A DNA stretch of 61,319 nucleotides from Mizuhopecten yessoensis (GCF_002113885.1 NW_018479869.1:22321-83639), one strand, 5' to 3'; positions 40,714 to 61,319 are shown, counted from the first letter of the stretch. The notes: generated from the letters alone by a model not told the origin. A program made the numbers and translations.

Positions 40714-41844
40714 TAACAGTTAAATATAACACTTGTGACTTATGACGTTGTCTTTCGATCAGTACAAATGAAACGCAAATATATTAACGCCTGTAGTAAA
40801 TTTTATATCAGGCACAGATACATTTTATTTTGTCTTTTCTAAAATAGACATTTATCCGTTTTCTCAAGGTTCTAACAGCTCCCAATACATTAAAACAGGA
40901 AGTTTATATTGAAGCAAGTGTAATAAAGTGAGTGTGAGTACATACCAATCAGTCAGAATCCTACCCTACTACGAACAACTCCAGGACAGTGTAATAAAGT
41001 GAGTGTGAGTACATACCAATAAGTCAGAATCCTACCCTACTACAAACAACTCCAGACAGTATAATAAAGTGAGCGTGAGTACATACCAATCAGTCAGAAT
41101 CCTACCCTACTACAAACAACTCCAGGACAGTATAATAAAGTGAGTGTGAGTACATACCAATCAGTCAGAATCCTACCCTACTACAAACAACTCCAGACAG
41201 TATAATAAAGTGAGTGTGAGTACATACCAATCAGTTAGAATCCAACCCTACTACAAACAACTCCAGGACAATATAATAAAGTGAGTGTGAGTACATACCA
41301 GTCAGTTAGAATCCAACCCTACTACAAACAGCTCCAGACAGTATAATAAAGTGAGTGTGAGTACATACCTATCAGTAAGAATACAACCCTACTACAAACA
41401 ACTCCAGACAGTATAATAAAGTGAGTGTAAGTACATACCAATAATATAATAATCCTATAATATACGATATAAATCGTCTGTTGTAACTCATAACAGTTAA
41501 ATATAACACTTGTGACTTATGACGTTGTCTTTCGATCAGTACAAATGAAACGCAAATATATTAACGCCTGTAGTAAATTTTATATCAGGCACAGATACAT
41601 TTTATTTTGTCTTTTCTAAAATAGACATTTATCCGTTTTCTCAAGGTTCTAACAGCTCCCAATACATTAAAACAGGAAGTTTATATTGAAGCAAGTGTAA
41701 TAAAGTGAGTGTGAGTACATACCAATCAGTCAGAATCCTACCCTACTACAAACAACTCCAGACAGTATAATAAAGTGAGTGTAAGTACATACCAATAATA
41801 TAATAATACTATAATATACGATATAAATCGTCTGTTGTAACTCA
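40714..41844. repeat. Tandem duplication (~40714-41489 and ~41491-41844) containing a 70-71-bp sub-repeat (~7.5 versus ~1.5 copies)
   Basis: An identical ~200-bp block TAACAGTTAAATATAACACTTG...GAAGCAAGTG starts both copies; both end in AAATCGTCTGTTGTAACTCA. Confidence 0.9.
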
Positions 41845-43715
41845 GTTTGTGACAATATAAAGGGGGTTTATAGACACCTTTGCTTTTTCGCTGTATTCTA
41901 CATATCTCTCGGAACATTTAAGGCATGGGATTTCATTCTTATGACATTTTGTACTAATGATTATTCCCCATTGAACGAAATGGCCACATGGTGAAATACA
42001 CATTTACCATGTTAACTATAACAGGATTTAATAGGAAACGTGACGAGTGCCTGGAAATTACTTGCCTCTTTGTCCATATCATATAACAACTTAAATTTAA
42101 AATTCACTCCAGTGTATAATTTGTAAACCCCAGTTCAAGATGTTTCCAATGATTGTCGGCTGTAGCCTGTATGACCGCCTCAGGGAGATTGTTACATACA
42201 TCGACAGTTCTGTAGCCAAAGGAATGTTTCCTTATAACTAATTTACAATGTTTTTCCTGTATTTTTTGAGTATGCTCTCTTATTCAAGATGTTGAGTCTG
42301 GATCAAAGATGCCAGCTTTGGTACAAGCTTTCTGCATATACGAACAACATTTACAAATAGGTGTTCCATTCCTTTGTATTTCTAATGAGAAATGGTAACA
42401 GGTACATTGTACATGAAATTTGGGAATTACATTTAAAAAGGCATTTCATGAAGATGATTATGAATCAAAGTACTAACCGACTTATAAGCAGTGCCTTTCA
42501 TTGTGTGTTTTTAAAGAAGCAACTTTTGAAAATACGCGAGACACATTTATCACCAATAATCAGTAAATAGACAGTTAATTGGTGGACAAGGGAGTTACGT
42601 AGCTTTGCTGTGTTATCATTCATACAGTGCAATGGAGAGTGAAAACTGTCTTATACATTAAAATCCTCATAAAAACAACGGAAGGTATTTTTAAAGACGT
42701 AATCTAACGTAAAATCTTTACCTGGTCTCGATCTTACAGAGCAATACCTAGGGGTACGTACCCCCGGGTTGAGGTCGAAGTTCATCAGTAATATTATCCA
42801 AAAGATAAATACCTCAGGTTAGGAAGAACTTACGATAAAACTATGTTGCCCTGCTATATATGTATGCCTAGTGCTGTAATTTTTCATTTCTGAAATAACG
42901 GAAATCACAAACAAACAAGAAAATTGAATAATATTTTAACACACACGGCAATATATTCTAGATTCACATAGAATTCCATACACCCCATACAAACGACACT
43001 TGTGAAAGGAAAATACCAGAAAGAATGGAATGTACAAGAAGGCAACAGTGGCACGGGAAGCGACGAACTTTAGAAAAGCAGAGTGTTTTGAATAGTGGAC
43101 AGTGTACTTAGCGCCGTCTGTGTCAGAGAAGATCACTTCCACGATTTCGCATTAAATATATTCTAGTATGTTTCCCATTCGATTTCTGCCTACAGTTGTT
43201 CAAAGTTTGTATAGTTTGTATAGTTTAATGTTGTTTGTATAGTTTGTATAGTTTAGTATAGTTTGTATAGTTAAGTATAGTTTGTTTAGTTTAGTATAGT
43301 TTGTATAGTTTATATAGTTTAGTAAAGTTTGTATAGTGAAGAATAGTTTGTATAGTTAAGTATAATCTGTATAGTTAAGTATAGTTTGTATAGTTTGTAT
43401 AGTTTAGTATTGTTTGTATAGTTTAGTATAGTTTGTATAGTTTAGTATAGTTTAGTATAGTTTGTATAGTTTAGTATATTTTATTTGGTTTAGTATAGTT
43501 TGTATATTTTAGAATAGTTTGTGTAGTTTAGTATAGTTTGTATAGTTAAGTATAGTTTATTATAGTTTGTATGTTTAGTATAGTTTAGTATAGTATGTAT
43601 AGTTTAGTATAGTTTGTATAGTTTGTTAAGTTTGTATGGTTTAGTATAGTTTGTATTGTTTGCATGTTTAGTATAGTTTGTATGGTTTAGTATAGTTATG
43701 TAGTTTTTATGCTTA

Positions 43716-43896
43716 TGTGGTGTTTGTTGACGTTCTGTAAGCGTGCGAATGACTGTGAGTGAAGCATGTGAGTGACCTCGAATTGTTCATGCATGTGTTT
43801 TGTTCCAAGATAAAAAGTACCCAAGCTGAGATAGCTGTCCAGTGTTCTATATTTGTGAAGCGTATGTGTGCCGACTGTACTGGTACGAATACAACA
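43716..43896 (+). repeat. 5' LTR (181 bp)
   Basis: TGTGGTG...TACAACA; no differences from the 3' LTR seen by eye. Confidence 0.97.
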
Positions 43897-43897
43897 A

Positions 43898-43911
43898 TGG
43901 CGTCACGAGCA
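43898..43911 (+). promoter_or_regulatory. Primer-binding site, tRNA-Ser(CGA)-type
   Basis: TGGCGTCACGAGCA lies 1 nt after the LTR and is complementary to a tRNA 3' end ...CGUGACGCCA, as in metazoan tRNA-Ser(CGA) with a GUCACG acceptor stem. Confidence 0.75.
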
Positions 43912-44291
43912 TTCCCGAGTCTGTTCGCGGAGGTCATGGATACGCTAGAATCCGAGGAGAATTTCTAGTGGGATTAATACAAGAGACGTAGAATCCCGGG
44001 TAGAGGGTGCGCGCCATCTTTGATTGTCTTTTGTGTGATACACGTGTTTTGTGTTTCACGTTGTCCCAATGTTTATGTTTTGTGTTTAGAGTTGTATCCT
44101 GGGTAGAGGGAGCAATTTATTCACAAATTCATTCGATAGTTGACCCGTGTAGAAGGCCAACTACTGTCTGATACCCTTGCGTGTTTTTAAATAATAAAAC
44201 AAAAACCAAAAACGAAACAAACGGAAACGGAACGGTTATCTTAGGACAATAAAAAAATAAAATATTTAGACAACATTTTATTCGTGGTCAC

Positions 44292-44579
44292 GTTGGTTAG
44301 GTGCTCTGGTGGCGCTGTACCAATGGTAACTGATGTTTGATTAATTTAGTTTCAAGTGTATTCAGTGAGGTAGGTGTTCTGTTGACGCCAGGCTGCTCTG
44401 AATATCTATATATATATTTATTAATTTTTTTTTGCTCGCTGTGGTAGGTGTTCTGTTTGACGCTAACCCTCGAGTATTATTTATATTAAAACCACAGCTA
44501 GGGTGTCGGTTGTTTTTCTCTTACTGTTCTAATATGCAGTGTGGTGGGTGGTAATTACCGCTACCCCTGTTTAATAGAA
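44292..44579 (+). other. Four related RNA stem-loops in the Gypsy leader (44292-44324, 44359-44404, 44434-44475, 44527-44579)
   Basis: GGTGC-TCTGGTG-GCGCT, GGTGT-TCTGTTG-ACGCC, GGTGT-TCTGTTTG-ACGCT and GGTGGT-AATT-ACCGCT, each on a different complementary basal stem. Confidence 0.7.
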
Positions 44580-44653
44580 ATAAATTTTGTAAAAGGATTT
44601 GGGTATATTTTTTTTTTTTTTTTCTCTTGTTGTTTCTGTGTTAACAGATCTAG

Positions 44654-45448
44654 ATGAACAAGCGGTATGCAGGGGTACTGATCGCAGATTCAAGAGCAAA
44701 TAATTTTCAAAGATTTGGTCATCCAGAGGATTTCAACATCAAATTTATAATTCAGAGAGGCGCACAAATTCAGGACCTGGTGGCATTATCAATTCCAATC
44801 GTTCGGACATTTGAACCATCAAAAACTTTAATAATAAAAGTTGCTGCTGGCATTAATGATTTGTTAAAATTGGAACGGGAGCCAGATGGGAAAATTCTAG
44901 TACCGTCAGACAGGTCACCGGACAATATTATTGAAGAACTTTCAGAATTTAGAACACGTGTACAGGTAGTTAGACCATCAAGCCGAGTTAGTTTCATCAC
45001 CATCCCTCCTGCTTCGTTAAAAGACTTTCAACTTAATAAATCCTCCAAACCAATTAACCAAAATCTGGTAACAAAATTACAAGAACAACACAATAAAACT
45101 GTGTTGGAGGTAAATTCTAGAATTCACCATTTAAATAACCAGACAGTGCCAACGGGTTGGACAGTTAAGTGGGCAGATACCATTGTTCACAAACACAAGA
45201 AAAGGAGAGGCCGTGCACGGAAAGTGATTACCGCTTACCGGTATTCCTTTGAACAGTATTACGATGGCTTACATGCCAAATCTGATGTAAAGAAAGAGTG
45301 GTACAAACAGGTGGTTTCTGGAATTCGAGGGGATATTACCAAATTGGAAAAACCAGGAAGTGAGATTCGAATTGTCACCACAGAATCTTCAGAAGAGGAC
45401 ACTCCGGTAGACACTGACGATAAAAGTTGGAAGAGACTTAAACGGTAA
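44654..45448 (+). CDS. SGNH/GDSL hydrolase-fold protein (264 aa) encoded inside the Gypsy element upstream of gag
   Basis: Blocks in the correct order and spacing: I LIADSR (Ser), II QRGA (Gly), III AAGINDL (Asn), V YYDGLH (Asp/His); uninterrupted ORF. Confidence 0.85.
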   Translation: MNKRYAGVLIADSRANNFQRFGHPEDFNIKFIIQRGAQIQDLVALSIPIVRTFEPSKTLIIKVAAGINDLLKLEREPDGKILVPSDRSPDNIIEELSEFRTRVQVVRPSSRVSFITIPPASLKDFQLNKSSKPINQNLVTKLQEQHNKTVLEVNSRIHHLNNQTVPTGWTVKWADTIVHKHKKRRGRARKVITAYRYSFEQYYDGLHAKSDVKKEWYKQVVSGIRGDITKLEKPGSEIRIVTTESSEEDTPVDTDDKSWKRLKR

Positions 45449-45454
45449 TTGTAA

Positions 45455-45568
45455 TACGGCAGCGGGTTGGTGATCTGTTGTCGCCTTATCCCCTGCACCG
45501 TAGAACTCTTAAACGATAAGTTGAGGTTGTGGGTTGGTGATCTGTTGTCGCCTTATCCCCTGCCACAA
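45455..45568 (+). other. 33-bp direct repeat (45464-45496, 45531-45563) forming two stem-loops between the SGNH ORF and gag
   Basis: GGGTTGGTGA-TCTGTTG-TCGCCTTATCCCCTGC occurs twice; basal stems TACGG/CCGTA and TTGTGG/CCACAA. Confidence 0.8.
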
Positions 45569-46971
45569 TGACTCGTATAAATTACTGTGAGAGACAAGAC
45601 CTACTACTATTGCCGGGTATTGGAGAGCGTCTGGCGGACAAAATTCTACAAGTCCGTGAAGTAATGGGGGACATTACTAAAGAGGTTCTGTTGGCCATTC
45701 CATACCTGAGGCCCACAGAGACCATGTTAAACCAAATAGACTTTACACCGCGATATGAACGGTTTACTGACATGGGTGAGAACTTGACGGGTGAGCATCA
45801 CACCTACAAAATGGACCCACCACCAAAGGTTCAACATCCTTCACCACCACGACTACAAGTTCAAAATCCAGGACCGTATTTTGACAATTATGGGTATCCT
45901 GGCAGCCGCCAGAGAGAACATCGACAGCAGTACCAGTACACTAATTACCGAGACCCATACGAACAGGAATACCACGGTCAGCCCCGTCAACCACAGTTCA
46001 ACTTTCCACCTCCAAGGTACAATCCGGGGAATCCGCCGCCAAGACGTGGACGGGTGGTAGCTCCCAAGACGTTACGCTATGATGGAAACTCCGATTGGAA
46101 AGCTTTTTGCACAAAGTTTACTAGATTCACTGAGGCGGAGAATCTTACTGCTCGTGAATGTCGGGATAACCTTTGCTGGATACTGGAGGGCAAAGCTAGT
46201 GAGTTTTTCACTATGCTCTTGGATCGTGATTCAACGATGGAATTTTTCGATATCATGTCAAAAATGGAACGCCGTTTTGGATTCAAGGAGCTGGCCGAGA
46301 CTACCCAAGCACGCCTTCGTAACGCCCGACAGTACCCTGACGAGAAGCTAGCAGATTGGGCTGATCGGGTGTTATCTTTAGCTACCAGAGCCTATCAGGA
46401 TCTGCCCGATGAGTTTATGTATAAACAAGCGATCTCCACAATTTGCCAGGGAGCAGCAGATAAAGAAGCAGGCCAATATGTTTCTAACCTAAGATTGGGA
46501 TCTATTGAGGAAGTGGTGGACAAGATGAGACTTTTTCAACATACAAGAAAGTCTATCTATGGTCGCGACCGTCCTAGACCTTCGCCTGTCGAAGAACTAA
46601 TCATACAAGAGGAAGAAGGTACTAGTGTCAGCAGGACATTCCAGCGTAGAGTCCCAAATTCTCAGTCCTCATTCCAGCCATCTTCAGCAACAAACCAAAG
46701 GCTGTCAGCCCTAGAAGACAAGGTATCGGACATGCAAAAATCCCTTAAACAAATTTTGGAGGCTGTTCGTGTCCCAGAGGAAAGGATCAAAAGGAATGTG
46801 GTTTGTTATGGTTGTGGCCAGACAGGCCATTTTAAGTCGAACTGTCCTAATGCTGAAGATAATAAATCTGTGAAACTCCTGGATGCGGCTGAAAAGACTG
46901 AAGGTGAAGAAGTAGTCCCTGGATCTGAAGAAGTTGAGGACTCGTTAAACACCGACAGGTCGGCCAACTAG
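45568..46971 (+). CDS. gag: Gag (467 aa) with an N-terminal helix-hairpin-helix motif and a C-terminal CCHC zinc knuckle
   Basis: INYCERQDLLLLPGIGERLADKILQVR (ComEA-type HhH); capsid-like YDGNSDWKAF...LEGKASEF...RQYPDEKLADW; CYGCGQTGHFKSNC. Confidence 0.92.
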   Translation: MTRINYCERQDLLLLPGIGERLADKILQVREVMGDITKEVLLAIPYLRPTETMLNQIDFTPRYERFTDMGENLTGEHHTYKMDPPPKVQHPSPPRLQVQNPGPYFDNYGYPGSRQREHRQQYQYTNYRDPYEQEYHGQPRQPQFNFPPPRYNPGNPPPRRGRVVAPKTLRYDGNSDWKAFCTKFTRFTEAENLTARECRDNLCWILEGKASEFFTMLLDRDSTMEFFDIMSKMERRFGFKELAETTQARLRNARQYPDEKLADWADRVLSLATRAYQDLPDEFMYKQAISTICQGAADKEAGQYVSNLRLGSIEEVVDKMRLFQHTRKSIYGRDRPRPSPVEELIIQEEEGTSVSRTFQRRVPNSQSSFQPSSATNQRLSALEDKVSDMQKSLKQILEAVRVPEERIKRNVVCYGCGQTGHFKSNCPNAEDNKSVKLLDAAEKTEGEEVVPGSEEVEDSLNTDRSAN

Positions 46972-49900
46972 ACCTAAGCCCGACCTTAGATGTTAAAAAT
47001 GGTCTTCATCCTACACGGTCAACAATTACACCAGATGACCTTATCAGTGAGGTAATGACTGATAACACCACCGAATCAACCCGTGTTGAACTTGATAATA
47101 TTACCCGATTACGGTCAACATCCATGTTTCAAGTGCCTGTTATCGTGGGAGGTTTTCATACAAGAGCAGTGGTGGATACCGGTGCTGAAGTATCAATCAT
47201 ATCGGATGAGGTATACAAAAACCTTGTTGAGCCACCCTCGATATTGAAACATGTGACACTTAATGCAGCAGGCAGAGATCAACCAATTGAGAGCTATATT
47301 GTTGGACCCATCGAACTAGATATAGGATCTAAGAGTTACAAGGTTAGCATTTATGTTGGACCAATTGAAGATGATATCTTGCTGGGTCTGGACTTTCTGA
47401 AGCCCAATAATGCTCAACTTGACATTTCAGGGGATACTCTTACCCTGGGTATTGGTGGAGAGAAAATTTCAGTGAACACAGGAAAAGAATTTTTACCTGC
47501 TTCCGAAGGCAAGGTATATGTACAGAAACGGACTGTAGTACCACCGAACAGTGTAGCAAGAGTGTGTTGTCGAATTTCCGGAAAGGTAGGCAGTTCTAGT
47601 CTAATTGTGGAGCCTACAGTAGAAAATGGACTACTAATTCCGAGATCATTGTATGACACAGCCTCGCAGATCAGGTTGTACTGTGTGAATGTCACGGACA
47701 GAAATATAATTCTGAAAAGGAAAACGGAAATTGCGATAGTCAATGAGGCAAGAGAAATTATTGCGAATGTTGAAAGTCATGCGGATCCCATATTTGTGGA
47801 GACATTACGCTGTGGCGAGGAAACACCGGACATTGCGCCTTCGCATGTACAGAGTCTCATTGATGGCGCGAAAGAACAGTTGTCGGTTGAGGAGTTAAGT
47901 CAATTTGCTCAACTTATTAAGGATAATTCCGATGTTTTTGCGAAAAATGACTTTGACCTGGGACATTTTAGTGCTATCAAACACAATATTGATACAGGTA
48001 CGGCACGGCCGATAAAGCAACGTTTTCGCAGAACGCCAGCATGTTTTGCCAACGAAGAGGATTTGCATCTAAAGAAGATGCTAGATTCTGGAGTTATCGA
48101 ATCCTCTACATCCGAGTGGGCGTCAGCACCAGTGCTGATCCGTAAACGTGACGGCGGAGTGCGCTGGTGCATAGATTATCGGGGACTGAACTCGGTAACT
48201 ACTAAAGACGTGTTTCCATTACCGTTAATAGAAGAATGCCTCGACGCATTGACCGATAACGTGTGGTTTTCGAAACTAGATGCCAACTCGGCTTATTGGC
48301 AAGTCCTTGTCAATGAATCGGACAGACATAAGACTGCCTTCAGTACAAAACACGGATTGTTTCAGTTTGTCAAAATGGGATTCGGACTTTGTAACGCCCC
48401 AGCAACTTATGCCAGAGTAATGAACCTGGTTCTTCGTGGATTAACATGGAACATTGTTCTTGCCTTCCTGGACGATGTGTTGGTTCTTGGGAAGACCTTC
48501 GATGAGCATCTCCAAAATCTAGCAGAAGTCTTTGAGCGCATCAGGGCGTATCAACTGAAACTCAAACCCGCTAAGTGCGAATTCTTTAAAAAGAAGGTTG
48601 ACTTCTTAGGGCGAACAGTTAGTGAAAGTGGCATTGAAACCAGTGGCAAACACATCGAAAAGATGAAGGAGTGGCCAACACCAACATCATCTAAGGATGT
48701 TGAGCAATTCTTGGGGTTTGCCAACTACCATCGCTCATTTATTCCCGAATATGCCAAAATTGCAGCTCCTCTGTACCAATTGACAGGAAAGAATGACTTT
48801 CGGTGGGATGAGGAACAGGAAAAAGCATTTTCCAGCTTAAAATCTTCCCTGAGTTCTCCACCTGTTTTGGGAATACCGAATAACAGCGATATGTTTGTGC
48901 TCGACACAGACGCATCTGACTTTGCTATTGGTGGTGAGTTGTGCCAAATTCAAGAAGGCAAGGAAAGAACAATAGCTTATGCTAGTTATTCCCTGACATC
49001 AGAACAGCGTCGCTATTGTACAACAAGAAAAGAACTTTTGGCAGTAGTTCGCTTTACCAGACAGTTTCGCCATTATCTGCTTGGTCGCAAGTTTGTGGTG
49101 AGAACTGATCACAACAGTTTGGTTTGGTTGCTCAACTTCAAAAATCCCCAAGGACAACTGGCGAGATGGCTTGAAGAGTTAAGCCAGTATGATCTAACTA
49201 TTGTACACCGAAAAGGAAAAGACCATCAAAATGCTGACAGTCTCTCCCGGAGTCTACCAAAAGACCAGTGCGGAAACTTGAAACATGGGCAAGATCCTAC
49301 CACGTTACCATGCGGAGGATGTGCCTATTGTACTCGGGCTCATGAACATTGGCATCAGTTTATCTCTGATGTGGACGAGGCGGTCTCTCTAAGTAACATA
49401 CCCTGCGTACAAAAAGTAACCCAGTCTGACAATACTTTCGCCGTGGAAGGAAGTCTATATAGCGAGAATTTGACCATAGAAGTGTCTGCTTTTGGAATAA
49501 ATATCCTCACTAGATCTGAAAGGAGTGATATTGAAGACATGAACGTCAACGCCTTGGATATTCAATTCTCGGGTTACTCGGCAAAGGAAATCCGGACTGC
49601 TCAGGAGCAAGATCCAGAGTTATCTATACTGCTAGAGTGGGTAAAGAATAAGAAAGAGGTGGACGAAGGAGAACTGTTTGGATCCAGTAGAGCCATAAAG
49701 TATTACTGGATTAACCGTGAGTTATACTTCCTGGATGAGTCTGGTATATTGTGGAGGAAGGATCTAGAAGACACTAGCAAAACTCAATCCTTGGTTATAC
49801 CTCCCAGTATGAGAGAAGACGCTATTTCTTTGTGCCATGACATCCCGGCTAGCGCTCATCAGGGAATCAACCGAACAGAATCCATGGTTCGCCAGAGGTT

Positions 49901-51080
49901 CCATTGGTATGGCTTGCCTCGCGACGTTCAAAAGTTCGTGAAATCCTGTGTCATCTGCAACACCAAGAAAAAAGCCAGTCGAAAGGCTCGATGCCCGTTG
50001 ACTCTTTTCCAATCAGGGGAACCCATGGAAAGAGTTCATCTTGACTTCTTGGGCCCACTACCCATAACAGCAACAGGAAATGAACACATATTAGTTATGG
50101 TAGACCAGTTTACCAAATGGGTTGAATGTGTTCCCTTACCTTCGCAGACCGCCGCGACAACCGCAAAAGCAGCTGTAAACGAATTCTTCGCGAGATTTGG
50201 ATATCCGTTCCAAATTCATACAGACCAAGGTAGAAACTTTGAAAGTCGTCTGTTTAAAGCTTTGTGTGAAGTTACGCAAATTCATAAAACTCGTACAACG
50301 GCTTATAGACCTTCTGCCAATGGACAAGTGGAGAGGTATAATCGCACCATCATGAACGCAGTTCGATGCTTCATAAACTCTCAAAGTGAATGGGACATCT
50401 ATTTACCACAGCTAGCTGGCGCGCTAAGGTGTTCCGTAAACCGCCAAACTGGACATACCGCCAACAAGTTAATGCTGGGCCGGGAGACCAATCAGCCTGC
50501 AGATCTCTTGTATGCCGCTCCATCGAACAAGAAGGCGAAGGACTCTCGCGACTCTGAAAGTTATGTGGACAATTTGGTAGATGCAATTCAGCGTGCCCAT
50601 GAAACCGCCAGAAAAACCCTTGCCACAACGCAGAGGAGAATGAAACGTGATTACGATGTTCGCGTTTACACTACCGAGTTCATTGAAGGGGATGTGGTCT
50701 ACGTCTTCGACAATGCAACGCCTAAGGGACAAAATCCCAAGTTAAAGGCCGTTTGGAAAGGTCCTGGACTCATAGTCAAAAAGTACACGCCGTACGTCTA
50801 TGGAGTACAGATGGGGAAGACGCGACAAGTCATTAATCACGATCGATTAAAAATGTGTAATGACCGTAAGCGACCCCAATGGATAATCGATCTCCAGGAG
50901 CACCGAGCGGAACCGGTAGAGGAAACCCACTGTGTCTGCCATCAAACGGATGATGGGACCATCATGATCCAGTGTGACTTTTGTTTTGTGTGGTTCCATG
51001 GACGTTGTGTGGGCTTAAATGTAGAGGAAGCCGAACAGCTGGAACTTTATTGCTGTACTACGTGTGAACTATCTGTATAA
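46938..51080 (+). CDS. pol: Pol polyprotein (protease, RT, RNase H, integrase, PHD finger); frame open from 46938, first ATG at 47055
   Basis: VDTGAEVS; RWCIDYR, FGLCNAPATY, FLDDVL; DTDAS, TDH; HHCC zinc finger; DFLGP...TDQGRNFES...NGQVERYN; WKGP; terminal C4HC3 PHD. Confidence 0.97.
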   Translation, partial: GLVKHRQVGQLDLSPTLDVKNGLHPTRSTITPDDLISEVMTDNTTESTRVELDNITRLRSTSMFQVPVIVGGFHTRAVVDTGAEVSIISDEVYKNLVEPPSILKHVTLNAAGRDQPIESYIVGPIELDIGSKSYKVSIYVGPIEDDILLGLDFLKPNNAQLDISGDTLTLGIGGEKISVNTGKEFLPASEGKVYVQKRTVVPPNSVARVCCRISGKVGSSSLIVEPTVENGLLIPRSLYDTASQIRLYCVNVTDRNIILKRKTEIAIVNEAREIIANVESHADPIFVETLRCGEETPDIAPSHVQSLIDGAKEQLSVEELSQFAQLIKDNSDVFAKNDFDLGHFSAIKHNIDTGTARPIKQRFRRTPACFANEEDLHLKKMLDSGVIESSTSEWASAPVLIRKRDGGVRWCIDYRGLNSVTTKDVFPLPLIEECLDALTDNVWFSKLDANSAYWQVLVNESDRHKTAFSTKHGLFQFVKMGFGLCNAPATYARVMNLVLRGLTWNIVLAFLDDVLVLGKTFDEHLQNLAEVFERIRAYQLKLKPAKCEFFKKKVDFLGRTVSESGIETSGKHIEKMKEWPTPTSSKDVEQFLGFANYHRSFIPEYAKIAAPLYQLTGKNDFRWDEEQEKAFSSLKSSLSSPPVLGIPNNSDMFVLDTDASDFAIGGELCQIQEGKERTIAYASYSLTSEQRRYCTTRKELLAVVRFTRQFRHYLLGRKFVVRTDHNSLVWLLNFKNPQGQLARWLEELSQYDLTIVHRKGKDHQNADSLSRSLPKDQCGNLKHGQDPTTLPCGGCAYCTRAHEHWHQFISDVDEAVSLSNIPCVQKVTQSDNTFAVEGSLYSENLTIEVSAFGINILTRSERSDIEDMNVNALDIQFSGYSAKEIRTAQEQDPELSILLEWVKNKKEVDEGELFGSSRAIKYYWINRELYFLDESGILWRKDLEDTSKTQSLVIPPSMREDAISLCHDIPASAHQGINRTESMVRQRFHWYGLPRDVQKFVKSCVICNTKKKASRKARCPLTLFQSGEPMERVHLDFLGPLPITATGNEHILVMVDQFTKWVECVPLPSQTAATTAKAAVNEFFARFGYPFQIHTDQGRNFESRLFKALCEVTQIHKTRTTAYRPSANGQVERYNRTIMNAVRCFINSQSEWDIYLPQLAGALRCSVNRQTGHTANKLMLGRETNQPADLLYAAPSNKKAKDSRDSESYVDNLVDAIQRAHETARKTLATTQRRMKRDYDVRVYTTEFIEGDVVYVFDNATPKGQNPKLKAVWKGPGLIVKKYTPYVYGVQMGKTRQVINHDRLKMCNDRKRPQWIIDLQEHRAEPVEETHCVCHQTDDGTIMIQCDFCFVWFHGRCVGLNVEEAEQLELYCCTTCELSV
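46944..47005 (+). promoter_or_regulatory. Putative -1 ribosomal frameshift signal (G TTA AAC plus stem-loop/pseudoknot)
   Basis: pol is -1 to gag and overlaps it over 46938-46971; slippery heptamer at 46944-46950 in the correct phase; 6-nt spacer; stem AGGTCGG/CCGACCT. Confidence 0.75.
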
Positions 51081-51116
51081 GTGTGAACTGACTCCACAGT
51101 ATACAGGGACTTCTAT

Positions 51117-51130
51117 AAAAGAGGGAGGAA
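51117..51130 (+). promoter_or_regulatory. Polypurine tract
   Basis: AAAAGAGGGAGGAA directly before the 3' LTR. Confidence 0.9.
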
Positions 51131-51311
51131 TGTGGTGTTTGTTGACGTTCTGTAAGCGTGCGAATGACTGTGAGTGAAGCATGTGAGTGACCTCGAATTG
51201 TTCATGCATGTGTTTTGTTCCAAGATAAAAAGTACCCAAGCTGAGATAGCTGTCCAGTGTTCTATATTTGTGAAGCGTATGTGTGCCGACTGTACTGGTA
51301 CGAATACAACA
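51131..51311 (+). repeat. 3' LTR (181 bp)
   Basis: Matches the 5' LTR; followed by the CTTA TSD. Confidence 0.97.
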
Positions 51312-52803
51312 CTTAGTATAGTTTAGTATTGGCTTGTATAGTTTAGTATTGGCTTGTATAGTTTAGTATAGTTTGCAGAGTTTAGTATAAATTGTACAGT
51401 TTAGTATATTTTATATAGTTTAGTATAGTTTGTATCGTTTAGAATAGTTTGTATAGTTTGTATATTTTGAATATTTTAGTATATTTTGTATAGTTTGTAA
51501 GGTTTAGTATAGTTTATTATAGTTTGTACTTTTAGTATAGTATGTATAGTTTAGTATAGTTTGTATGGTTTAGTATAGTTTGTATTGTTTGCATGTTTAG
51601 TATAGTTTGTATAGTGTGTATAGTTTAGTATAGTTTGCATAGTTTAGTATAGTTTGTATAATTTAATATAGTTGGTATAGTTTATTATAGTTTGTATGTT
51701 TAGTGTAGTTTAGTATGTATAGTTTGTATAATTTAGTATTGTTTGTATAGTTTAGTATAGTTTAATTTAGTCTGTATTTTTAGTTTAGTTTAGTATAGTT
51801 TAGTATAGTGTGTATAGTTTAAGTTAGTTTGTATAGCTTCATATGGTTGGTATAGTTTATTATAGTTTGTTTGTTTAGTTTAGTTTAGTATAGTATCTAT
51901 AGTTTGTATAGTTTAGTATAGTTTGTAAAGTTTTATGGTTTAGTATAGTTTGTATGTTTAGTATAGTTTAGTATAGTTAAGTATAGTGTTTATAGTTTGT
52001 ATAGTTTGGTATAGTTTAGAATAGTTTACTATAGTTAAGAATAGTTAAGTATAGTTTGTATAGTGTGTATAGTTTGCATAGTTTAGTATAGTTTGTATAG
52101 TTTAATATAGTTGGTATAGTTAATCATAGTTTATCATAGTTTATCATAGTTTGTATGTTTAGTTTAGTATGTATAGATTGTATAGTTTAGTATTGTTTGT
52201 ATAGTTTAGTATAGTTTGTATAGTTAAGTATAGTTTGTATGTTTAGCATAGTTTGTATTGTTTGCATGTTTAGTATAGTTTGTATAGTGTGTATAGTTTA
52301 ATATAGTTTGCATAGTTTAGTATAGTTTGTATAATTTAATATAGTTGGTATAGTTTATTATAGTTTGTATGTTTAGTTTAGTTTAGTATGTATAGTTTGT
52401 ATAATTTAGTATTGTTTGTATAGTTAAGTATAGTTTAATTTAGTCTGTATTTTTAGTTTAGTTTAGTATAGTTTAGTATAGTGTGTATAGTTTAGTTTAG
52501 TTTGTATAGCTTCATATAGTTGGTATAGTTTATTATAGTTTGTTTAGTTTAGTTTAGTATAGTATCTATAGTTTGTAAAGTTTAGTATAGTTTGTATGTT
52601 TAGTATAGTTTAGTATAGTTAAGTATAGTGTTTATAGTTTGTATAGTTTGGTATAGTTTAGAATAGTTTTCTATAGTTAAGAATAGTTAAGTATAGTTTG
52701 TATAGTGTGTATAGTTAAGAATAGTTAAGTATAGTTTGTATAGTGTGTATAGTTAAGAATAGTTAAGTATAGTTTGTATAGTGTGTATAGTTAAGAATAG
52801 TTT

Positions 52804-53707
52804 NNNNNNNNNNNNNNNNNNNNNNNNNNNNNNNNNNNNNNNNNNNNNNNNNNNNNNNNNNNNNNNNNNNNNNNNNNNNNNNNNNNNNNNNNNNNNNNNN
52901 NNNNNNNNNNNNNNNNNNNNNNNNNNNNNNNNNNNNNNNNNNNNNNNNNNNNNNNNNNNNNNNNNNNNNNNNNNNNNNNNNNNNNNNNNNNNNNNNNNNN
53001 NNNNNNNNNNNNNNNNNNNNNNNNNNNNNNNNNNNNNNNNNNNNNNNNNNNNNNNNNNNNNNNNNNNNNNNNNNNNNNNNNNNNNNNNNNNNNNNNNNNN
53101 NNNNNNNNNNNNNNNNNNNNNNNNNNNNNNNNNNNNNNNNNNNNNNNNNNNNNNNNNNNNNNNNNNNNNNNNNNNNNNNNNNNNNNNNNNNNNNNNNNNN
53201 NNNNNNNNNNNNNNNNNNNNNNNNNNNNNNNNNNNNNNNNNNNNNNNNNNNNNNNNNNNNNNNNNNNNNNNNNNNNNNNNNNNNNNNNNNNNNNNNNNNN
53301 NNNNNNNNNNNNNNNNNNNNNNNNNNNNNNNNNNNNNNNNNNNNNNNNNNNNNNNNNNNNNNNNNNNNNNNNNNNNNNNNNNNNNNNNNNNNNNNNNNNN
53401 NNNNNNNNNNNNNNNNNNNNNNNNNNNNNNNNNNNNNNNNNNNNNNNNNNNNNNNNNNNNNNNNNNNNNNNNNNNNNNNNNNNNNNNNNNNNNNNNNNNN
53501 NNNNNNNNNNNNNNNNNNNNNNNNNNNNNNNNNNNNNNNNNNNNNNNNNNNNNNNNNNNNNNNNNNNNNNNNNNNNNNNNNNNNNNNNNNNNNNNNNNNN
53601 NNNNNNNNNNNNNNNNNNNNNNNNNNNNNNNNNNNNNNNNNNNNNNNNNNNNNNNNNNNNNNNNNNNNNNNNNNNNNNNNNNNNNNNNNNNNNNNNNNNN
53701 NNNNNNN
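52804..53707. other. Assembly gap (N run) within the satellite
   Basis: 904 N bases. Confidence 1.
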
Positions 53708-55796
53708 ATAGTTAAGTATAGTTTGTATAGTGTGTATAGTTAAGAATAGTTAAGTATAGTTTGTATAGTGTGTATAGTTAAGAATAGTTTGTATAGTGTG
53801 TATAGTTTGCATAGTTAAGTATAGTTTGTATAGTGTGTATAGTTAAGAATAGTTAAGTATAGTTTGTATAGTGTGTATAGTTTGCATAGTTTAGTATAGT
53901 TTGTATAGTTAAATATAGTTGGTATAGTTAATTATAGTTTATCATAGTTTATCATAGTTTGTATGTTTAGTTTAGTATGTATAGATTGTATAGTTTGTAT
54001 AGTTTAGTATAGTTTGTATAGTTAAGTATAGTTTGTATGTTTAGTATGGTTTAGTATTGTATAGTTTGTACAGGTTGCATAGTTTAGTAGTTTGTATAGT
54101 TTGTATAGTTTAGTATAGTTTGTATAGTTTAGTATAGTTTGTATAATTTGTATAGTTTAGTATTGTTTGTATAGTGTATATAGTTTGCATAGTTTAGTAT
54201 AGTTTGGTATAGTTTAGTATAAATTGTACAGTTTAGTATATTTTATATAGTTTAGTATAGCTTGTATAGTTTAGTATAGTTTGTATAGTTAAGTATAGTT
54301 TGTATAGTTTAGTATAGTTTGTATAGTTTAGTATAGTTTGTAGTGTGTATAGTTTTCATAGTTTAGTATAGTTTTTATAGTTTAATATAGTTGGTATAGT
54401 TTATTATCGTTTGTATGTTTAGTTTAGTATGTATAGTTTAGTATAGTTTGTATAGTTAAGTATAGTTTGTATGTTTAGTATGGTTTAGTATTGTATAGTT
54501 TGTGCAGGTTGCATAGTTTAGTAGTTTGTATAGTGTGTATAGTTTAGTATAGTTTGTATAATTTGTATAGTTTAGTATTGTTTGTATAGTGTATATAGTT
54601 TGCATAGTTTAGTATAGTTTGGTATAGTTTAGTATAAATTGTACAGTTTAGTATATTTTATATAGTTTAGTATAGCTTGTATAGTTTAGTATATTTTGTA
54701 TAGTTAAGTATAGTTTGTATAGTTTAGAATAGTTTGTATAGTTAAGTATATTTTGTATAGTTTAGTATAGTTTGTATAGTTTAGTATAGTTTGTATAGTT
54801 TAGTATAGTTTGTAGTGTGTATAGTTTGCATAGTTTAGTATAGTTTTTATAGTTTAATATAGTTGGTATAGTTTATTATCGTTTGTATGTTTAGTTTAGT
54901 ATGTATAGTTTAGTATTGTTTGTATAGTTAAGTATATTTTGTATGGTTTAGTATAGTTTGTATTGTTTAGTATAGTTGTATAGTTTTTATGCTTAGTTTA
55001 GTTTAGTATTGTCTTGTATAGTTTAGAATAGTTTGTATAGTTTAGTATAGTTTGTATAATTTGTATAGTTTAGTAAAGTTTGTAGATAGTTAAGTATAGT
55101 TTGGTATAGTGTATATAGTTTACATAGTCTTTTATAGTTTGGTAAAGTTTAGTTAGGTATAGTTTAGTATAAATTGTACAGTTTAGTATATTTTATATAG
55201 TTTAGTATAGTTTAGTTTAGATAGTTAAATATAGTTTAGTATAGTTTGTATCGTTTAGAATAGTTTGTATATTTTAGTATATTTTGTATAGTTTATATAG
55301 TTTAGTATATTTTGTATAGTTAAGTAAAGTTTGTAGATAGTTTAGTATAGTTTGGTATAGTTTAATATAGTTTGTATAGTTAAGTATAGTTCAGTATAGT
55401 TTGTATGTTTAGTATAGTATGTCTAGTTTAGTATAGTTTGTATAATTTGTATAGTTTAGTATAGTTTGTATAGTGTATATAGTTTGCATAGTTTAGTTTA
55501 GTACAGTTTAGTATATTTTATATAGTTAAGTATAGTTTGTATAGTTTCATTTAGTTGGTATAGTTTATTATAGTTTGTATGTTAAGTATAGTTTGTATAG
55601 TTTAGTATAGTTAAGTATAGTTTGTATAGTTTAGTATATTTTGTATAGTTAAGTATTGTTGGTATAGTTTAATATAGTTGGTATAGTTTATTATAGTTTG
55701 TATGTTTAGTTTAGTTTAGTATTGTTTGTATAGTTTGTATAGTTTAGTATAGTTGTATAGTTTTTATGCTTAGTATAGTTTAGTATTGTCTTGTAT

Positions 55797-55910
55797 TTTT
55801 TGTTTGTTTGATTTTTTTTAACGTCCTATTAACAGCTAAGGTCATTTAAGGACGGCCTCCCCTGTGTGCAAGATGCATGCGTGTAGTGTTTGCGTGTGTA
55901 TTTTGGGAGG
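55797..55910 (-). mobile_element. 5'-truncated SINE 3' end with a (CAAA)n tail and a 12-bp TSD
   Basis: Minus strand ...ATGACCTTAGCTGTTAATAGGACGTTAAAA...CAAACAAACAAAAA; ATTGTCTTGTAT at 55785-55796 and 55911-55922. Confidence 0.85.
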
Positions 55911-56751
55911 ATTGTCTTGTATAGTTTAGTATAGTTTGTATAGTTTGCATAGTTTGTATAATTTAGTATAGTTTGTATAATTTGTATAGTTTAGTATAGT
56001 TTGTATAGTGTATATAGTTTGCATAGTTTAGTATAGTTTGGTATAGTTTAGTATAGTTTAGTATAAATTGTACAGTTTAGTATATTTTATACAGTTTAGT
56101 ATAGTTTGTATAGTTAGTTTGTATCGTTTAGAATAGTTTGTATAGTTTGTATATTTTGTATAGTTTAGTATATTTTGTATAGTTTGTAAAGTTTATTATA
56201 TTTTGTATAGTTAAGTAAAGTTTGTAGATAGTTTGGTATAGTTTGGATAGTTTAATATAGTTTGTATAGTTAAGTATAGTTTGTATGTTTAGTATAATAT
56301 AGTTTAGTATAAATTGTAGTTTAGTATATTTTATGTAGTTCAGTATAGTATGTCTAGTTTAGTATAGTTTGTATAGTTTAGTATAGTTTGTATAGTGTAT
56401 ATAGTTTTCATAGTTTAGTAGTTTAGTTTAGTATAAATCGTACAGTTTAATATATTTTATATAGTTAAGTATAGTTTGTATAGTTTAGTATAGTTTGTAT
56501 AGTTTGGTTAGTTTAGTATAGTTTGTATGGTGAAGTATAGTTTGTATGTTTAGTATAGTTTGTATAGTTTAGAATAGTTTGTATAGTTTAGTATATTTTG
56601 TATAGTTAAGTAAAGTTTGTATAGTTTTAGTATACTATGTATAGTCTAGTATAGTTTGTAAAGTTAAGTATAGTTTGTTTAGTTTAGTATAGTTTAGAAT
56701 AGTTTGTATAGTTAAGTATATTTTGTATAGTTTAGTATAGTTTGTATAGTT

Positions 56752-59700
56752 ATTGTATATGTAGAGGTATTATGGCAACATTTGTGTGTATTCTTAAGAG
56801 CCGAAATTCTGAATCCGTCTCCGGTCGTGTTAACATTCTCTCCACAGATGTAAAGAAAACGAGAGAGGATACTTTCTGGCCTAACGGTATTCGTGTTCGA
56901 AAGTGGTATTCATATAATCAGCACTATGGTGCCAACGGTAAAGCAAACATCGATGTTGGCCAGTAACGGTCTTCTTTTTTCTTTATGCATCTATGCCTTC
57001 GTGATGGCTTCTGTGCACATTATGACTTGGAATGTGACCGGCATCATGTCGTCAGCCTCGTACCTGCACGATGCATTACAGACAGAAAACGTTGACATTT
57101 GCGGAATTTCAGAGCACTGGCTATTCGAAGAAAATGTTCACATGTTACAAAGTATTCATTCTGGTTACGACTATTTCGCCATTTGTGATTTTTCAACACA
57201 TGCCTTATCTGACCACAGAACGCGAAAATGAGGTGTAGCCCTTTTATGGAAAAAAACTCTGTCGAACCGCATAACTGTTGTTGATTCAGACGATGACCAC
57301 ATCACTATCCTAAAGCTTGTTTCTAATTCCGGTGTGTGGCATGTTATACAGGTATATCTACCCAATACGAGCTATGGTTCTGAAGCTTTTAACCAGTACA
57401 TCGACAAGATAGACGTTCTGTGCGAGTCTTTTTCTCTTCAAGGATCAACCATTATCATGGGAGACTTCAACGCTCGCCTTAGTGGTCCTCGACTACCAGA
57501 CGACTATCAAAACAACAGAGGTGCTCGCCTTCAACGGTGCCTGGATCGTCACCAGTTGTGTGCTTTAACGACATCGTTAATTTGTTCCGGTCCGTTGCAT
57601 ACTTACGTGCACTCCGATTATGGCGCCTCGTCGCTTATTGATCATGTGATTGTTGACTCTTCCAAACTTGATCTTATCTCGAACTGTCATGTTGGCGGTC
57701 AGGATTACTTAGACGTCTCAAATCACAGAACTATCTTCTGTGATATCTCCTTTCCTACCGTGTCCCAAGTTGACAGTCCTCAAATGGAACGCATCACTTT
57801 TAAATGGACTTCACCTGATGCCTCCGCCTCCGCAGGTACAGCACTTTATAACGAGAACCTTCATAGTTTTATTGTGAAGTCAAACCTTAACTCTCTCGAG
57901 TTAAAAGCATCCTCCGACATTGACATTTTTAATGATCGTTTGATCAAATGTTTACAGGACGTCTCTTTAGCTTCCCTTCAAAAGCGGAAGTTCCGGGAAT
58001 TCCTAAAGCCTTATTGGAAGGGTGAACTTAAAGGGCTACACCATGAGATGTGGAGGTTAAGGTGTATTTGGGATAACGAAGGTCGGCCTCGTGATCCCGA
58101 TTTCCATTCTTTCCGGATGTATAAGGACGCAAAACGTGAGTTTCGTCGTAAGCACCGCCGATTATCAGAGGACCACCTTTTGACTCTGAACTTAGATATT
58201 GAGAACGCAGCAGATTTAAATTTAAATTCATTTTGGTCCCTAATTAAAGCCCGGTCTAATAGAGTGTCCACTGGATCTGCCGGAGCTGAAATAGTGTTTA
58301 ATAATTTAACTGTTAGAGATCCGTCGGATTTAGCGTTGCGCTGGGGGGAGTACTTTGCTGAAATTTACTCTCACTCAGATGATAGTGTTTGTGACAGTGA
58401 TTTTGTAAAATCTGGACTTTCAGATTTTCTGCAAGGTAATGGTCCATTGGAAGAATCAGCTGCGATAGTTTTTACGGTTGAGGAAATTAAATGTTGTTGT
58501 AAAAGTTTTCCTCATGGAAAGGCACCCGGTGTAGATTCACTTGTTTATGAAAACCTTATATATGCCTGCGACTCTCTGTATAAATGCTTATGCACATTGT
58601 TTAATGCTTTTGCAAAATTAGAATATGTACCAACTTTTCTTAAACAAGGCTTGATATGCACATTATATAAAGGTCATAACAAACCTAAGAATGACCCAAA
58701 TAGCTATAGAGCAATATCGCTTTTATCAGTCATATTGAAAGTTTATGAAAAACTGTTACTGACAAGATTAGAAAGTTCAGAACTTTTTTGTGTGAATCCA
58801 TTACAACATGGATTCCAAAAACAAGTAAGTAGTACCATGACTTCATATATTGTGCATGAAGCCATTGAGTATGCAAGTGAACTTGATAGCAAGTTGTTTA
58901 CATGTTTCTTAGACGCTTCAAAAGCTTTTGACTGTGTGTGGCATGACGGTCTATTTCTCAAACTCGCACGTTTGGGTTTTAGTCGGAAATATGTATGTGT
59001 AATTATGTCCTTGTATAAAGATATGTTTAGTGTTGTTATTCATCAAAACTTTGTATCGAAAATGTTCAAGATATGCCAGGGAATCCGTCAGGGTAGTATT
59101 ATCTCCCCTTGGTTATACTTTGTTTATATAAATGATCTCTTGAATGATCTTTGTGATTCTAATTATTTCTTGAGTATCTGTGATATCAACATTACTTGCC
59201 CAACACAGGCAGACGATATATGTCTTCTTGCTTTTTCTGAACACAATTTAGATTTGCTCATTCATATATGTTAGTATAGCTGTAAATGGAGGTTTAGATA
59301 CAACCCCTCCAAATCAGTAATAATCGTTTATAACGAACGAACTAGTAACCACTCACAGTCGAACCGTAGGTGGCACTTAGGCGACAGTGACGTCACTGAA
59401 TGTACAAATGTTAAACATGTTGTGATTAGTATAAATAAGTTTAAACCAGGTCGCCCTGATGTCGATGAAGTTATCCACAAAATACGTGGTCAATGTTTTG
59501 CTCTTTTGAATTGTAATTTATTCGGCCCCAGCATCAACCCTTTAACAGGAGTGAAAATATACCTCTCTATTGTTCTCCCTCGAAGCATATTTGGCTGTGA
59601 GTTGTGGTACTCACTTACAAACTCAGATTGGCGTCGTCTGTAATCAGTACATCACTTGTGTGCCAAACTAATTCAAAATTTCCCACTGAGGACCAGATCT

Positions 59701-60715: not shown

Positions 60716-61319
60716 AGTTTAGTATAGTTTGTATAGTTTAGTATAGTTTGTATAGTGAATATAGTTTGCATAGTTTAGTATAGTTTTGTTTAGTTGAGTA
60801 TAGTTTATTATAAATTGTACAGTTTAGTATATTTTTTATATAGTTTAGTATAGTTTGTATAGTTAAATATAGTTTAGTATAGTTTGTATAGTTAGTTTGT
60901 TTCGTTTAGAATAGTTTGTATATTTTGCATAGTTTAATATATTTTGTATAGTTTGTATAGTTTAGTATATTTTGTATAGTTTAGAATAGTTTGTATATTT
61001 TGTATAGTTTAGTAAAGTTTGTAGATAGTTTAGTATAGTTTGGTATAGTTTGTATGTTTAGTATAGTATAGTTTAGTATAAATTATAGTTTAGTATATTT
61101 CATGTAGTTCAGTATAGTTTGTATGTTTAGTATAGTTTGTCTAGTTTAGTATAGTTTGTATAGGTTAGTATAGTTTGTAGCGCAAAATACTGTTCTTGCT
61201 GCTTTTTTTTTGACATTAACATATATATAAATATACATACAATGTCCATGGGCGTCTAGAATCGCCTATGGGCGTATATATTAACAAATAAGTATAAATT
61301 CACATTTTGATATAAAAAA

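Follow-up and report, generated by a model that had tools for sequence, protein, structure and literature searches.

In a 61,319-nucleotide (nt) stretch of Mizuhopecten yessoensis DNA (GCF_002113885.1 NW_018479869.1:22321-83639), analysed over its full length and referred to below as the window, positions 43716–51311 of the plus strand are occupied by a Ty3/Gypsy retrotransposon of 7,596 bp in total. The element carries three genes in the order ORF1, gag and pol, the first of which (an open reading frame, ORF, upstream of gag) is predicted to encode a stand-alone esterase of the SGNH/GDSL type, and none of the three reading frames (44654–45448, 45568–46971 and 47055–51080) is interrupted by an internal stop. 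All features of the element described below lie on the plus strand. Two long terminal repeats (LTRs) of 181 nt, at 43716–43896 (5′ LTR, TG...CA) and 51131–51311 (3′ LTR), are 100% identical to each other; the repeat tool returned a length of 182 nt because the base preceding both LTRs happens to match. They are flanked by a target-site duplication (TSD) that reads CTTA at 43712–43715 and again at 51312–51315. A candidate primer-binding site (PBS) with a TGG start one base past the 5′ LTR was read at 43898–43915, its 3′ bound being approximate, and a polypurine tract (PPT) of 14 purines directly abuts the 3′ LTR (51117–51130). A tRNA corresponding to the PBS candidate was not found, the window being devoid of tRNA genes and the related loci holding one unrelated tRNA. 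Both flanks of the element consist of one 19-bp satellite, the pre-insertion site is readable through, and no further LTR, internal copy or fragment of the element was found in the window. With the domain order protease, reverse transcriptase (RT), RNase H and integrase, TG...CA LTRs, a short TSD, a PBS and PPT adjoining the LTRs, and a Gag comprising a bilobed retroviral-type capsid and a zinc knuckle, the element has the properties of the Metaviridae. Judged by these features, it is young and structurally intact and was recently inserted. The original prediction of a recent and probably competent element is borne out for youth and intactness by the identical LTRs and open reading frames, although the zero LTR differences bound the age only loosely because the LTRs are just 181 nt long, and competence is not demonstrable from sequence.

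The product of ORF1 (44654–45448; 264 amino acids, aa) was assigned to the SGNH/GDSL-type esterases on the basis of conserved catalytic columns, an AlphaFold model and Foldseek comparisons. A whole-library search yielded 157 clusters at 50% identity, with proteins of around 250 aa, and an alignment of 56 relatives (21–46% identity) contains the SGNH blocks, i.e., the catalytic Ser, the oxyanion Gly and Asn, and Asp-x-x-His. Ser13 is conserved in 54 of 54 sequences, Gly36 and Asp204 each in 55 of 56, Asn68 in 48 of 56 and His207 in all 56. Pfam matches to Lipase_GDSL were weak and occurred in five of the 56 family members, and a PDB sequence-profile search with the family returned just one chance match; as sequence methods failed in this way, the fold was settled by structure prediction. 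The AlphaFold model (predicted local distance difference test, pLDDT, of 91.6) is a three-layer α/β/α structure that Foldseek relates with a probability of 1.0 to many solved SGNH esterases, at target-normalised template-modelling (TM) scores of 0.45–0.69. The best solved matches are bacterial sialate O-acetylesterases, platelet-activating factor (PAF) acetylhydrolase Ib and GDSL lipases, all with a probability of 1.0. Among the top 50 matches listed from the PDB and the viral library, those with a functional name are mostly SGNH/GDSL-type esterases, lipases and acylhydrolases, and the viral structure library contributes generic SGNH hydrolases.

Neither a signal peptide nor a membrane segment was detected in the ORF1 translation, no LINE-type (long interspersed nuclear element) domains were found in the longer members of the family, and an exact look-up of the window ORF1 sequence returned no identical record. 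Two further features characterize the protein: a basic β-hairpin insert at aa 176–196 (45183–45245), with 25–53% Lys/Arg across all 56 sequences, and an acidic C-terminal tail (45380–45445) that in about half of the family closes with a Trp-containing basic motif (26 of 56 members have a Trp among their final 12 residues). Insert and tail may serve in nucleic-acid binding, localisation or docking. Taken together, sequence and model indicate that ORF1 encodes a small SGNH esterase, probably cytosolic, with a complete catalytic set. The earlier suggestion of a lipid/acyl-modifying enzyme is appropriate as far as conserved blocks and fold identify an SGNH esterase, but lipid is not singled out as the substrate class, the best matches being sialate O-acetylesterases and PAF acetylhydrolase.

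Homologues of ORF1 occupy the same position in other elements. All ten contexts with downstream sequence (10/10) read ORF1, then gag, then a Gypsy pol, and the gag genes that follow belong to four types. A helix-hairpin-helix (HhH)/PNMA-type gag with a PHD-containing pol is found in the window and in the related loci L005, L006 and L010 (partial); a DUF7041-type gag in L001 (a Holothuria leucospilota chromosome), L004, L008, L009 and one gene table without DNA; a 319-aa CCHC gag in L007 and L011; and a PEG10-like gag in L013. Identities between pairs are 41% in ORF1 and 62% in pol for the window and L005, 51% and 61% for L007 and L011, and 76% and 91% for L001 and L008. The sets L005/L006, L008/L009 and L001–L003 consist of identical loci; other pairs are diverged, with 41–62% protein identity. 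The locus L006 is a contig from run SRR23580857, a gill metatranscriptome of Argopecten irradians (PMC10989825), which indicates transcription of a relative of the element, with ORF1, gag and part of pol joined in a single contig. In these comparisons, members of the ORF1 family have so far been encountered solely in first position within Gypsy elements, and their divergence is roughly in step with that of pol. Its contexts mark ORF1 as a long-standing gene of the element and not a passenger. The original prediction had named a one-off capture of the SGNH gene as the outcome that would undo it; instead, L005/L006 and L010 retain the ORF1-gag(-pol) order along with the RNA hairpins described below, and three more Gypsy lineages have ORF1 first.

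The distribution of ORF1 is nevertheless uneven. Neither the locus L014 nor any of 80 metagenome loci that hold pol relatives matched the ORF1 profile, most of these metagenome loci being short of informative upstream sequence. Where upstream sequence suffices (L014, L054, L021, L022, L024 and the gene table around P0165), ORF1 is missing from elements whose pol is 42–52% identical. The gene is thus old in several lineages yet patchy, which could reflect either repeated loss or movement between Gypsy lineages; either history is in keeping with the modular picture outlined for rotifer elements (PMC5408684). ORF1-bearing relatives are known from scallops and sea cucumbers, and the relationships of the element place it in a marine-invertebrate (bivalve-type) clade of Ty3/Gypsy.

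The second gene, gag (45568–46971; 467 aa), was characterized using Pfam, a PDB profile search, a structure model and Foldseek. In the AlphaFold model an HhH domain (aa 1–60) is followed by a disordered Pro/Gln/Tyr-rich linker (aa 65–160), a bilobed helical capsid (aa 170–333), a long helix (aa 373–400) and the zinc knuckle. The N-terminal domain (45568–45747) is of the (HhH)2 type by family profile and has a pLDDT of about 95. Using a profile of 23 Gag relatives, its first 66 positions matched the HhH region of EEPD1 at E = 2e-10 and ComEA at 1.5e-7, and Foldseek aligned ComEA with the domain at a root-mean-square deviation of 2.7 Å over 65 columns. The capsid domain (46075–46566; pLDDT > 90) has its top PDB folds in PNMA2, dArc1/2 and Arc, and the same capsids head the Foldseek matches of Gag as a whole. 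Pfam recovered the CCHC zinc knuckle (46801–46851; PF00098, 23.6 bits, over cut-off) as well as matches to Retrotrans_gag, PNMA and HHH_3, all of them weak. By profile and model, an HhH domain of the ComEA/EEPD1 type occupies the place of the retroviral matrix domain in this Gag. Of 23 gag relatives, 15 (many from Mytilus species) have the domain in the alignment; it is common among bivalve gag relatives.

The pol gene extends from a frameshift heptamer to its stop codon (46944–51080, the first ATG of the frame lying at 47055) and aligns with its relatives at 98–100% coverage. It encodes an aspartic protease (47133–47420; PF13975, PF13650, PF00077), RT (48138–48617; PF00078, E = 6e-29), RNase H (48804–49190; PF17917, PF17919), the zinc-binding domain and catalytic core of integrase (49797–50312; PF17921, PF00665) and a C-terminal PHD finger of the C4HC3 type (50931–51065; PF00628, 28.5 bits, over cut-off) that corresponds to residues 1293–1337 of the 1341-aa pol ORF. 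Pfam returned no match to a chromodomain or dUTPase in pol. Frame reading shows that gag and pol overlap at 46938–46971, the −1 pol frame opening 34 nt ahead of the gag stop, and within this overlap the heptamer GTTAAAC lies in the gag frame at 46944–46950. A heptamer occurs at the equivalent in-frame place in eight related loci, with T as first base in seven and G, as in the window, in one. The −1 frame is open past the heptamer in eight of nine elements including the window, the exception being one defective relative, and 15 of 23 gag relatives retain, close to their C-terminal end, the Leu-Asn that the heptamer encodes. This conservation supports a programmed −1 frameshift well.

All eight zinc ligands of the PHD finger are present and are kept in 25–26 of 26 aligned relatives. 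Its nearest solved chains, with E-values down to 1e-11, are those of PHF2, CFP1, PHF8/KDM7, BPTF, ING and TAF3, which are readers of histone H3 trimethylated at lysine 4 (H3K4me3). The Trp of the aromatic cage is invariant, and the second cage position is occupied by Tyr in 19 and by Phe in 5 of the 26 relatives. A PHD domain occurs in 106 of the 120 best pol relatives listed, with Ostrea edulis, Pinctada imbricata and Lingula anatina as named hosts, which makes the PHD-integrase a trait of the clade and not a peculiarity of this copy. Fusions between PHD fingers and retrotransposons have already been noted in general terms (PMC6673714; 10.1101/2021.11.30.470311). Other accessory modules were observed in the clade. 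L014 is a derivative lacking RT and integrase in which a TatD-type DNase domain is fused after the protease (L014 10862–12202), and a DNase of the same type is encoded by an ORF after pol beside P0165, within the same HhH-gag/PHD-pol clade. According to precomputed Pfam matches, a Tpt1/KptA RNA 2′-phosphotransferase domain (PF01885) is present in the pol relative P0240 and in the gag relative P0311 from Mytilus galloprovincialis.

Preceding ORF1 is a 5′ leader of 757 nt (43897–44653) containing seven upstream ATGs that open short ORFs, and between ORF1 and gag lies a spacer of 119 nt (45449–45567) without any ATG. The fold of the whole leader is unexceptional relative to shuffled sequences (z = −1.56). 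Locally, the leader holds four hairpins: hairpin 1 at 44291–44325 (−18.1 kcal/mol, z = −3.4; covariance model E = 1e-8), hairpin 2 at 44361–44402 (E = 2e-9), hairpin 3 at 44435–44474 (E = 3e-7) and hairpin 4 at 44536–44570, a variant with a shorter loop that has the same fold shape and was missed by the covariance model. Two more are located in the spacer, hairpin 5 at 45459–45496 (−18.4 kcal/mol, z = −2.65; E = 4e-9) and hairpin 6 at 45525–45564 (E = 4e-10), which ends 4 nt ahead of the gag ATG; their cores constitute an exact 33-nt direct repeat. The shape is two-tiered, with an outer stem of 3–7 bp, a small internal loop, an inner stem of 5–6 bp and a loop of 4–7 nt, and it is shared by all ten copies tested (six from the window and two each from L005 and L010; z of −1.7 to −3.6). 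The core pattern matches four times, compared with 0.51 expected, and none of 100 shuffles reached four. Across the alignment, pairing in the inner stem amounts to 93%; both partners have changed in two of the five inner-stem pairs, and the loop-closing pair varies between A-U, C-G, G-C, U-A and U-G.

Searched against 93 sources, the covariance model recovered five of the six window copies and two copies each in L005, L006 and L010 (E ≤ 3e-7). It found no credible hairpin in 90 other loci, which include the other ORF1-bearing lineages and ORF1-less relatives, and we accordingly rejected the hairpin as a trait common to the whole clade or to every ORF1-bearing element. The window, L005 and L010 each have a hairpin ahead of ORF1 and one that abuts the gag ATG, 4–22 nt upstream of it, and their ORF1-gag spacers (119, 52 and 144 nt, respectively) are free of ATGs. 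Rfam, searched at a permissive threshold, gave one match at chance level and neither a ribozyme nor any known element. The two-tier hairpin is real and lineage-specific; the covariation statistics are indicative, the sample being three elements. Besides the hairpins, the end of the leader (44604–44650) contains a run of 17 T with more pyrimidines that terminates with CAG, six bases ahead of the ORF1 ATG. A similar combination occurs in L010 and not in L005, and it could be a splice acceptor or a binding site for a pyrimidine-tract protein.

The original prediction had outlined the element at exactly these coordinates, with identical LTRs, a perfect TSD and three uninterrupted ORFs, and its layout (LTR, PBS, hairpins, SGNH ORF, two hairpins, HhH-Gag, −1 frameshift, protease-RT-RNase H-integrase-PHD, PPT, LTR) proved right in every part. 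Its view that this goes well beyond the standard plan applies to the three-gene layout, which is real, and less so to the PHD finger (106 of 120 pol relatives) and the HhH domain (bivalve gags), which are clade-wide.

We consider it rather probable, at roughly 0.8, that the element is an intact three-gene Ty3/Gypsy retrotransposon with a conserved pre-gag SGNH esterase, an HhH-Gag and a PHD-Pol expressed by −1 frameshifting, the functional roles of which we infer as follows. The full-length RNA would serve as messenger for all three genes, with Gag-Pol produced via −1 ribosomal frameshifting. By analogy with the active, phospholipid-binding esterase of LINE ORF1 proteins, the ORF1 enzyme could deacylate or deacetylate a host lipid or glycan, and this hydrolysis might aid assembly or trafficking of particles or help to escape a host response. 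The HhH domain would keep Gag on nucleic acid, and the PHD finger would read histone H3 tails and thereby bias integration. The hairpins before ORF1 and at the start of gag may act as binding sites for packaging, for ribosome access to gag after ORF1, or for both.

Several observations weigh against this reading. No Pfam family matched the window ORF1 at threshold, its block I lacks the usual Gly ahead of Asp-Ser, and the enzymatic activity, substrate and translation of ORF1 are predictions from sequence and model. The pol of L013 is 52–54% identical to those of L007 and L011 at only 32–33% identity in ORF1, an incongruence with co-divergence; this pol was called as two pieces with one break. 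The closest pol relatives lacking ORF1 are 42–52% identical to the window, compared with about 37% for the other ORF1-bearing lineages, which implies that the gene is dispensable in related elements and that its history requires losses or transfers. Downstream of the heptamer no stable structure was detected, minimum free energy folds being no better than shuffles (z = −0.4 and −0.7) in a method that leaves pseudoknots outside its scope. At the cage position that is Tyr in 19 of 26 relatives, the PHD finger of the window has His, and the only insertion seen lies in a satellite, which is not obviously H3K4me3 chromatin. The covariation of the hairpins, finally, derives from nine or ten copies in three elements, its score was reached by 2 of 500 shuffles and the measure is inflated by relatedness.

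One alternative explanation for ORF1 is that it represents a host gene captured by chance, a one-off or recent passenger without a role in the element. Accessory ORFs of LTR elements are often family-specific captures (PMC5408684), and ORF1 is missing from close pol relatives as set out above. However, the same ORF1 in the same position of elements whose pol is just 30–62% identical, and in front of four gag types, largely refutes a passenger; its catalytic residues are also kept across the family, and no homologue outside an element was encountered in the ten contexts read. We regard a captured passenger as the least probable of the alternatives. Scarcely more probable is that ORF1 substitutes for env as an extracellular, receptor-destroying sialate O-acetylesterase. 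Some enveloped RNA viruses carry such an enzyme, and bacterial sialate O-acetylesterases are among the best structural matches of ORF1, but PAF acetylhydrolase and generic GDSL lipases match it equally well, its translation has no signal peptide or transmembrane segment, and a fusion or receptor-binding domain is not present.

More weight, though still only that of an unlikely explanation, is due to the view of ORF1 as mainly a nucleic-acid-binding or scaffold protein built on the SGNH fold, in which hydrolysis is secondary or lost, as in the OSK domain of Oskar. The basic β-hairpin insert, rich in Lys/Arg in 56 of 56 sequences, the location ahead of gag, which parallels that of LINE ORF1 proteins, and hairpin RNAs on both sides of ORF1 would all suit such a protein, and non-catalytic SGNH proteins exist, Oskar being an example mentioned in PMC3905857. 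A near-invariant Ser-Gly-Asn-Asp-His set would be unexpected without catalysis, however, and the ZfL2-1 esterase displays no oligo(A) RNA binding (PMC3905857). A different question concerns the hairpins, which could be translation elements, i.e., devices for internal entry or re-initiation that permit gag to be read after the 264 codons of ORF1, and not packaging signals. We see this as a real possibility that falls clearly short of an even chance. Hairpins abutting the gag ATG in the window, L005 and L010, ATG-free spacers in the same elements, seven upstream ATGs in the leader and the confinement of the hairpins to this ORF1-bearing sub-lineage (window, L005/L006 and L010) are in its favour. 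On the other hand, other ORF1-bearing lineages manage without the hairpin at spacers of 11–250 nt, four more copies are situated far upstream before ORF1, and the hairpin matches no Rfam family; roles in translation and packaging are, moreover, mutually compatible. An intact three-gene element with a catalytically equipped ORF1 remains our preferred reading. A broader proposal, to which we attach slightly less than even odds, is that active SGNH esterases of a family specific to retroelements are an old, vertically kept third gene ahead of gag in several bivalve and echinoderm Ty3/Gypsy lineages, one sub-lineage of which would use RNA hairpins to couple ORF1-gag expression or packaging, and that they constitute an undescribed class of Metaviridae accessory genes.

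Minisatellites and satellites (periods of 42, 37, 51, 70 and 19 bp) are the prevailing sequence of the window, in which no host gene was recognised. Repeat tracts extend over 1029–3860, 7667–8891, 11942–13679, 40917–41442, 43204–43702, 51316–56751 and 60714–61179. Downstream of the element, the 19-bp satellite contains an assembly gap (N run) from 52804 to approximately 53715, and the very low G+C of the composition profile there is due to this N run. By Pfam, a LINE-like ORF with endonuclease/exonuclease/phosphatase and RT domains (57334–59274, +) is embedded in the same satellite, and a separate short RT fragment occurs at 30946–31632 (−). Among the relatives, L011 (GCA_040505915.1, JBEVXV010000241.1) has a tandem arrangement, gag-pol-ORF1-gag-pol, that repeats every 6824 nt. 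L011 as well as P0171, P0286 and P0288 are retrotransposon contigs within metagenome-assembled genomes of bacterial symbionts labelled ‘Sedimenticola sp.’ or ‘Candidatus Thiodiazotropha sp.’, which looks like contamination of the bins by host DNA. A practical consequence is that elements of this kind contaminate genome bins of bacterial symbionts.

SGNH esterases recur in unrelated retroelements, namely CR1/L2/RTEX LINEs, Penelope-like elements, Ngaro and Vesta. ORF1 adds a large conserved family (157 clusters) at a new place, ahead of gag, in marine invertebrates of ecological and economic importance, for which intact young copies and transcribed relatives exist. With one gene in front of four gag types and close relatives without it, the need of a retroelement for an esterase is now open to comparison. 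An HhH domain in matrix position and an H3K4me3-type PHD finger on integrase should also be useful for studies of integration-site choice. Interest would rise further if the esterase family turned out to be both ancient and active as an accessory gene of Metaviridae; a pre-gag esterase that is old and vertically kept would represent a fifth link, independent or shared, between retroelements and acyl-ester hydrolysis.

Esterase genes are established in rotifer Vesta LTR elements and in Penelope-like Athena elements (PMC5408684). Vesta of bdelloid rotifers (Rodriguez, Kenefick and Arkhipova 2017, PMC5408684) resembles the element described here in being an LTR element with a separate GDSL/SGNH esterase gene unrelated to env. 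As far as its described features can be likened to ORF1, the Vesta esterase likewise has intact catalytic residues and no transmembrane or coiled-coil part, and in both cases the idea is that of a module common to different classes of retroelement. However, it is encoded by ORF3, 3′ of pol, whereas the esterase is here the first gene, upstream of gag; the Vesta pol carries a dUTPase, for which no match was obtained here; and the hosts of Vesta are freshwater rotifers and not of the marine bivalve or echinoderm type. In LINEs, esterase genes are established for the ORF1 proteins of CR1/L2/RTEX, in the form of an active enzyme with affinity for acidic phospholipids (PMC3905857). Those of CR1/L2/RTEX, e.g., ZfL2-1 (Kapitonov and Jurka 2003; Schneider et al. 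2013, PMC3905857), share with the present element an SGNH esterase that comes first, upstream of the RT gene. Likened without sequence alignment, they also share conserved catalytic residues and structural neighbours including PAF acetylhydrolase (PMC3905857), and PHD fingers, too, are used by CR1/L2/RTEX LINEs. In contrast, the LINE esterase is a domain of a multimerising ORF1 protein that replaces Gag, while the esterase here is a separate 264-aa protein beside a true Gag, and LINE replication is target-primed as opposed to the LTR/integrase mode of this element. In Ngaro, an SGNH hydrolase ORF follows the recombinase gene (Goodwin and Poulter 2004, as cited in 10.1101/2021.08.05.455354). 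To the extent of that citation, Ngaro is similar in combining an extra SGNH hydrolase ORF of unproven function with a gag-RT retroelement and dissimilar in placing this ORF after the recombinase gene, in its split direct repeats and in having no integrase.

With respect to integrase, the closest parallel is offered by chromoviruses, which also have a reader of histone tails at the C-terminus of a Gypsy integrase that presumably targets integration. Their reader is a chromodomain, which recognizes H3K9 methylation, whereas that of the present element is a PHD finger closest to H3K4me3 readers. The Gypsy clades of molluscs (C-clade, MolGy1-16; Thomas-Bulle et al. 2018, PMC6238403) overlap in hosts with the pol and gag relatives of the element (Ostrea, Pinctada, Mytilus, Lingula, scallop); that survey was based on RT/RNase H only and makes no mention of an extra ORF, PHD finger or HhH domain (PMC6238403). 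Our literature search, the scope of which excluded the Repbase and GyDB catalogues, retrieved no account of a Ty3/Gypsy element whose esterase gene precedes gag, nor of an HhH-Gag. The impression that this combination had been uncharacterised in Ty3/Gypsy holds for the layout, on which this search yielded no paper, and is to be restricted for its parts, given the PHD fusions already noted and the GDSL precedent of Vesta 3′ of pol (PMC5408684). While its modules are individually known in retroelements, the element extends the link between esterases and retroelements to a new group and to a new gene position.

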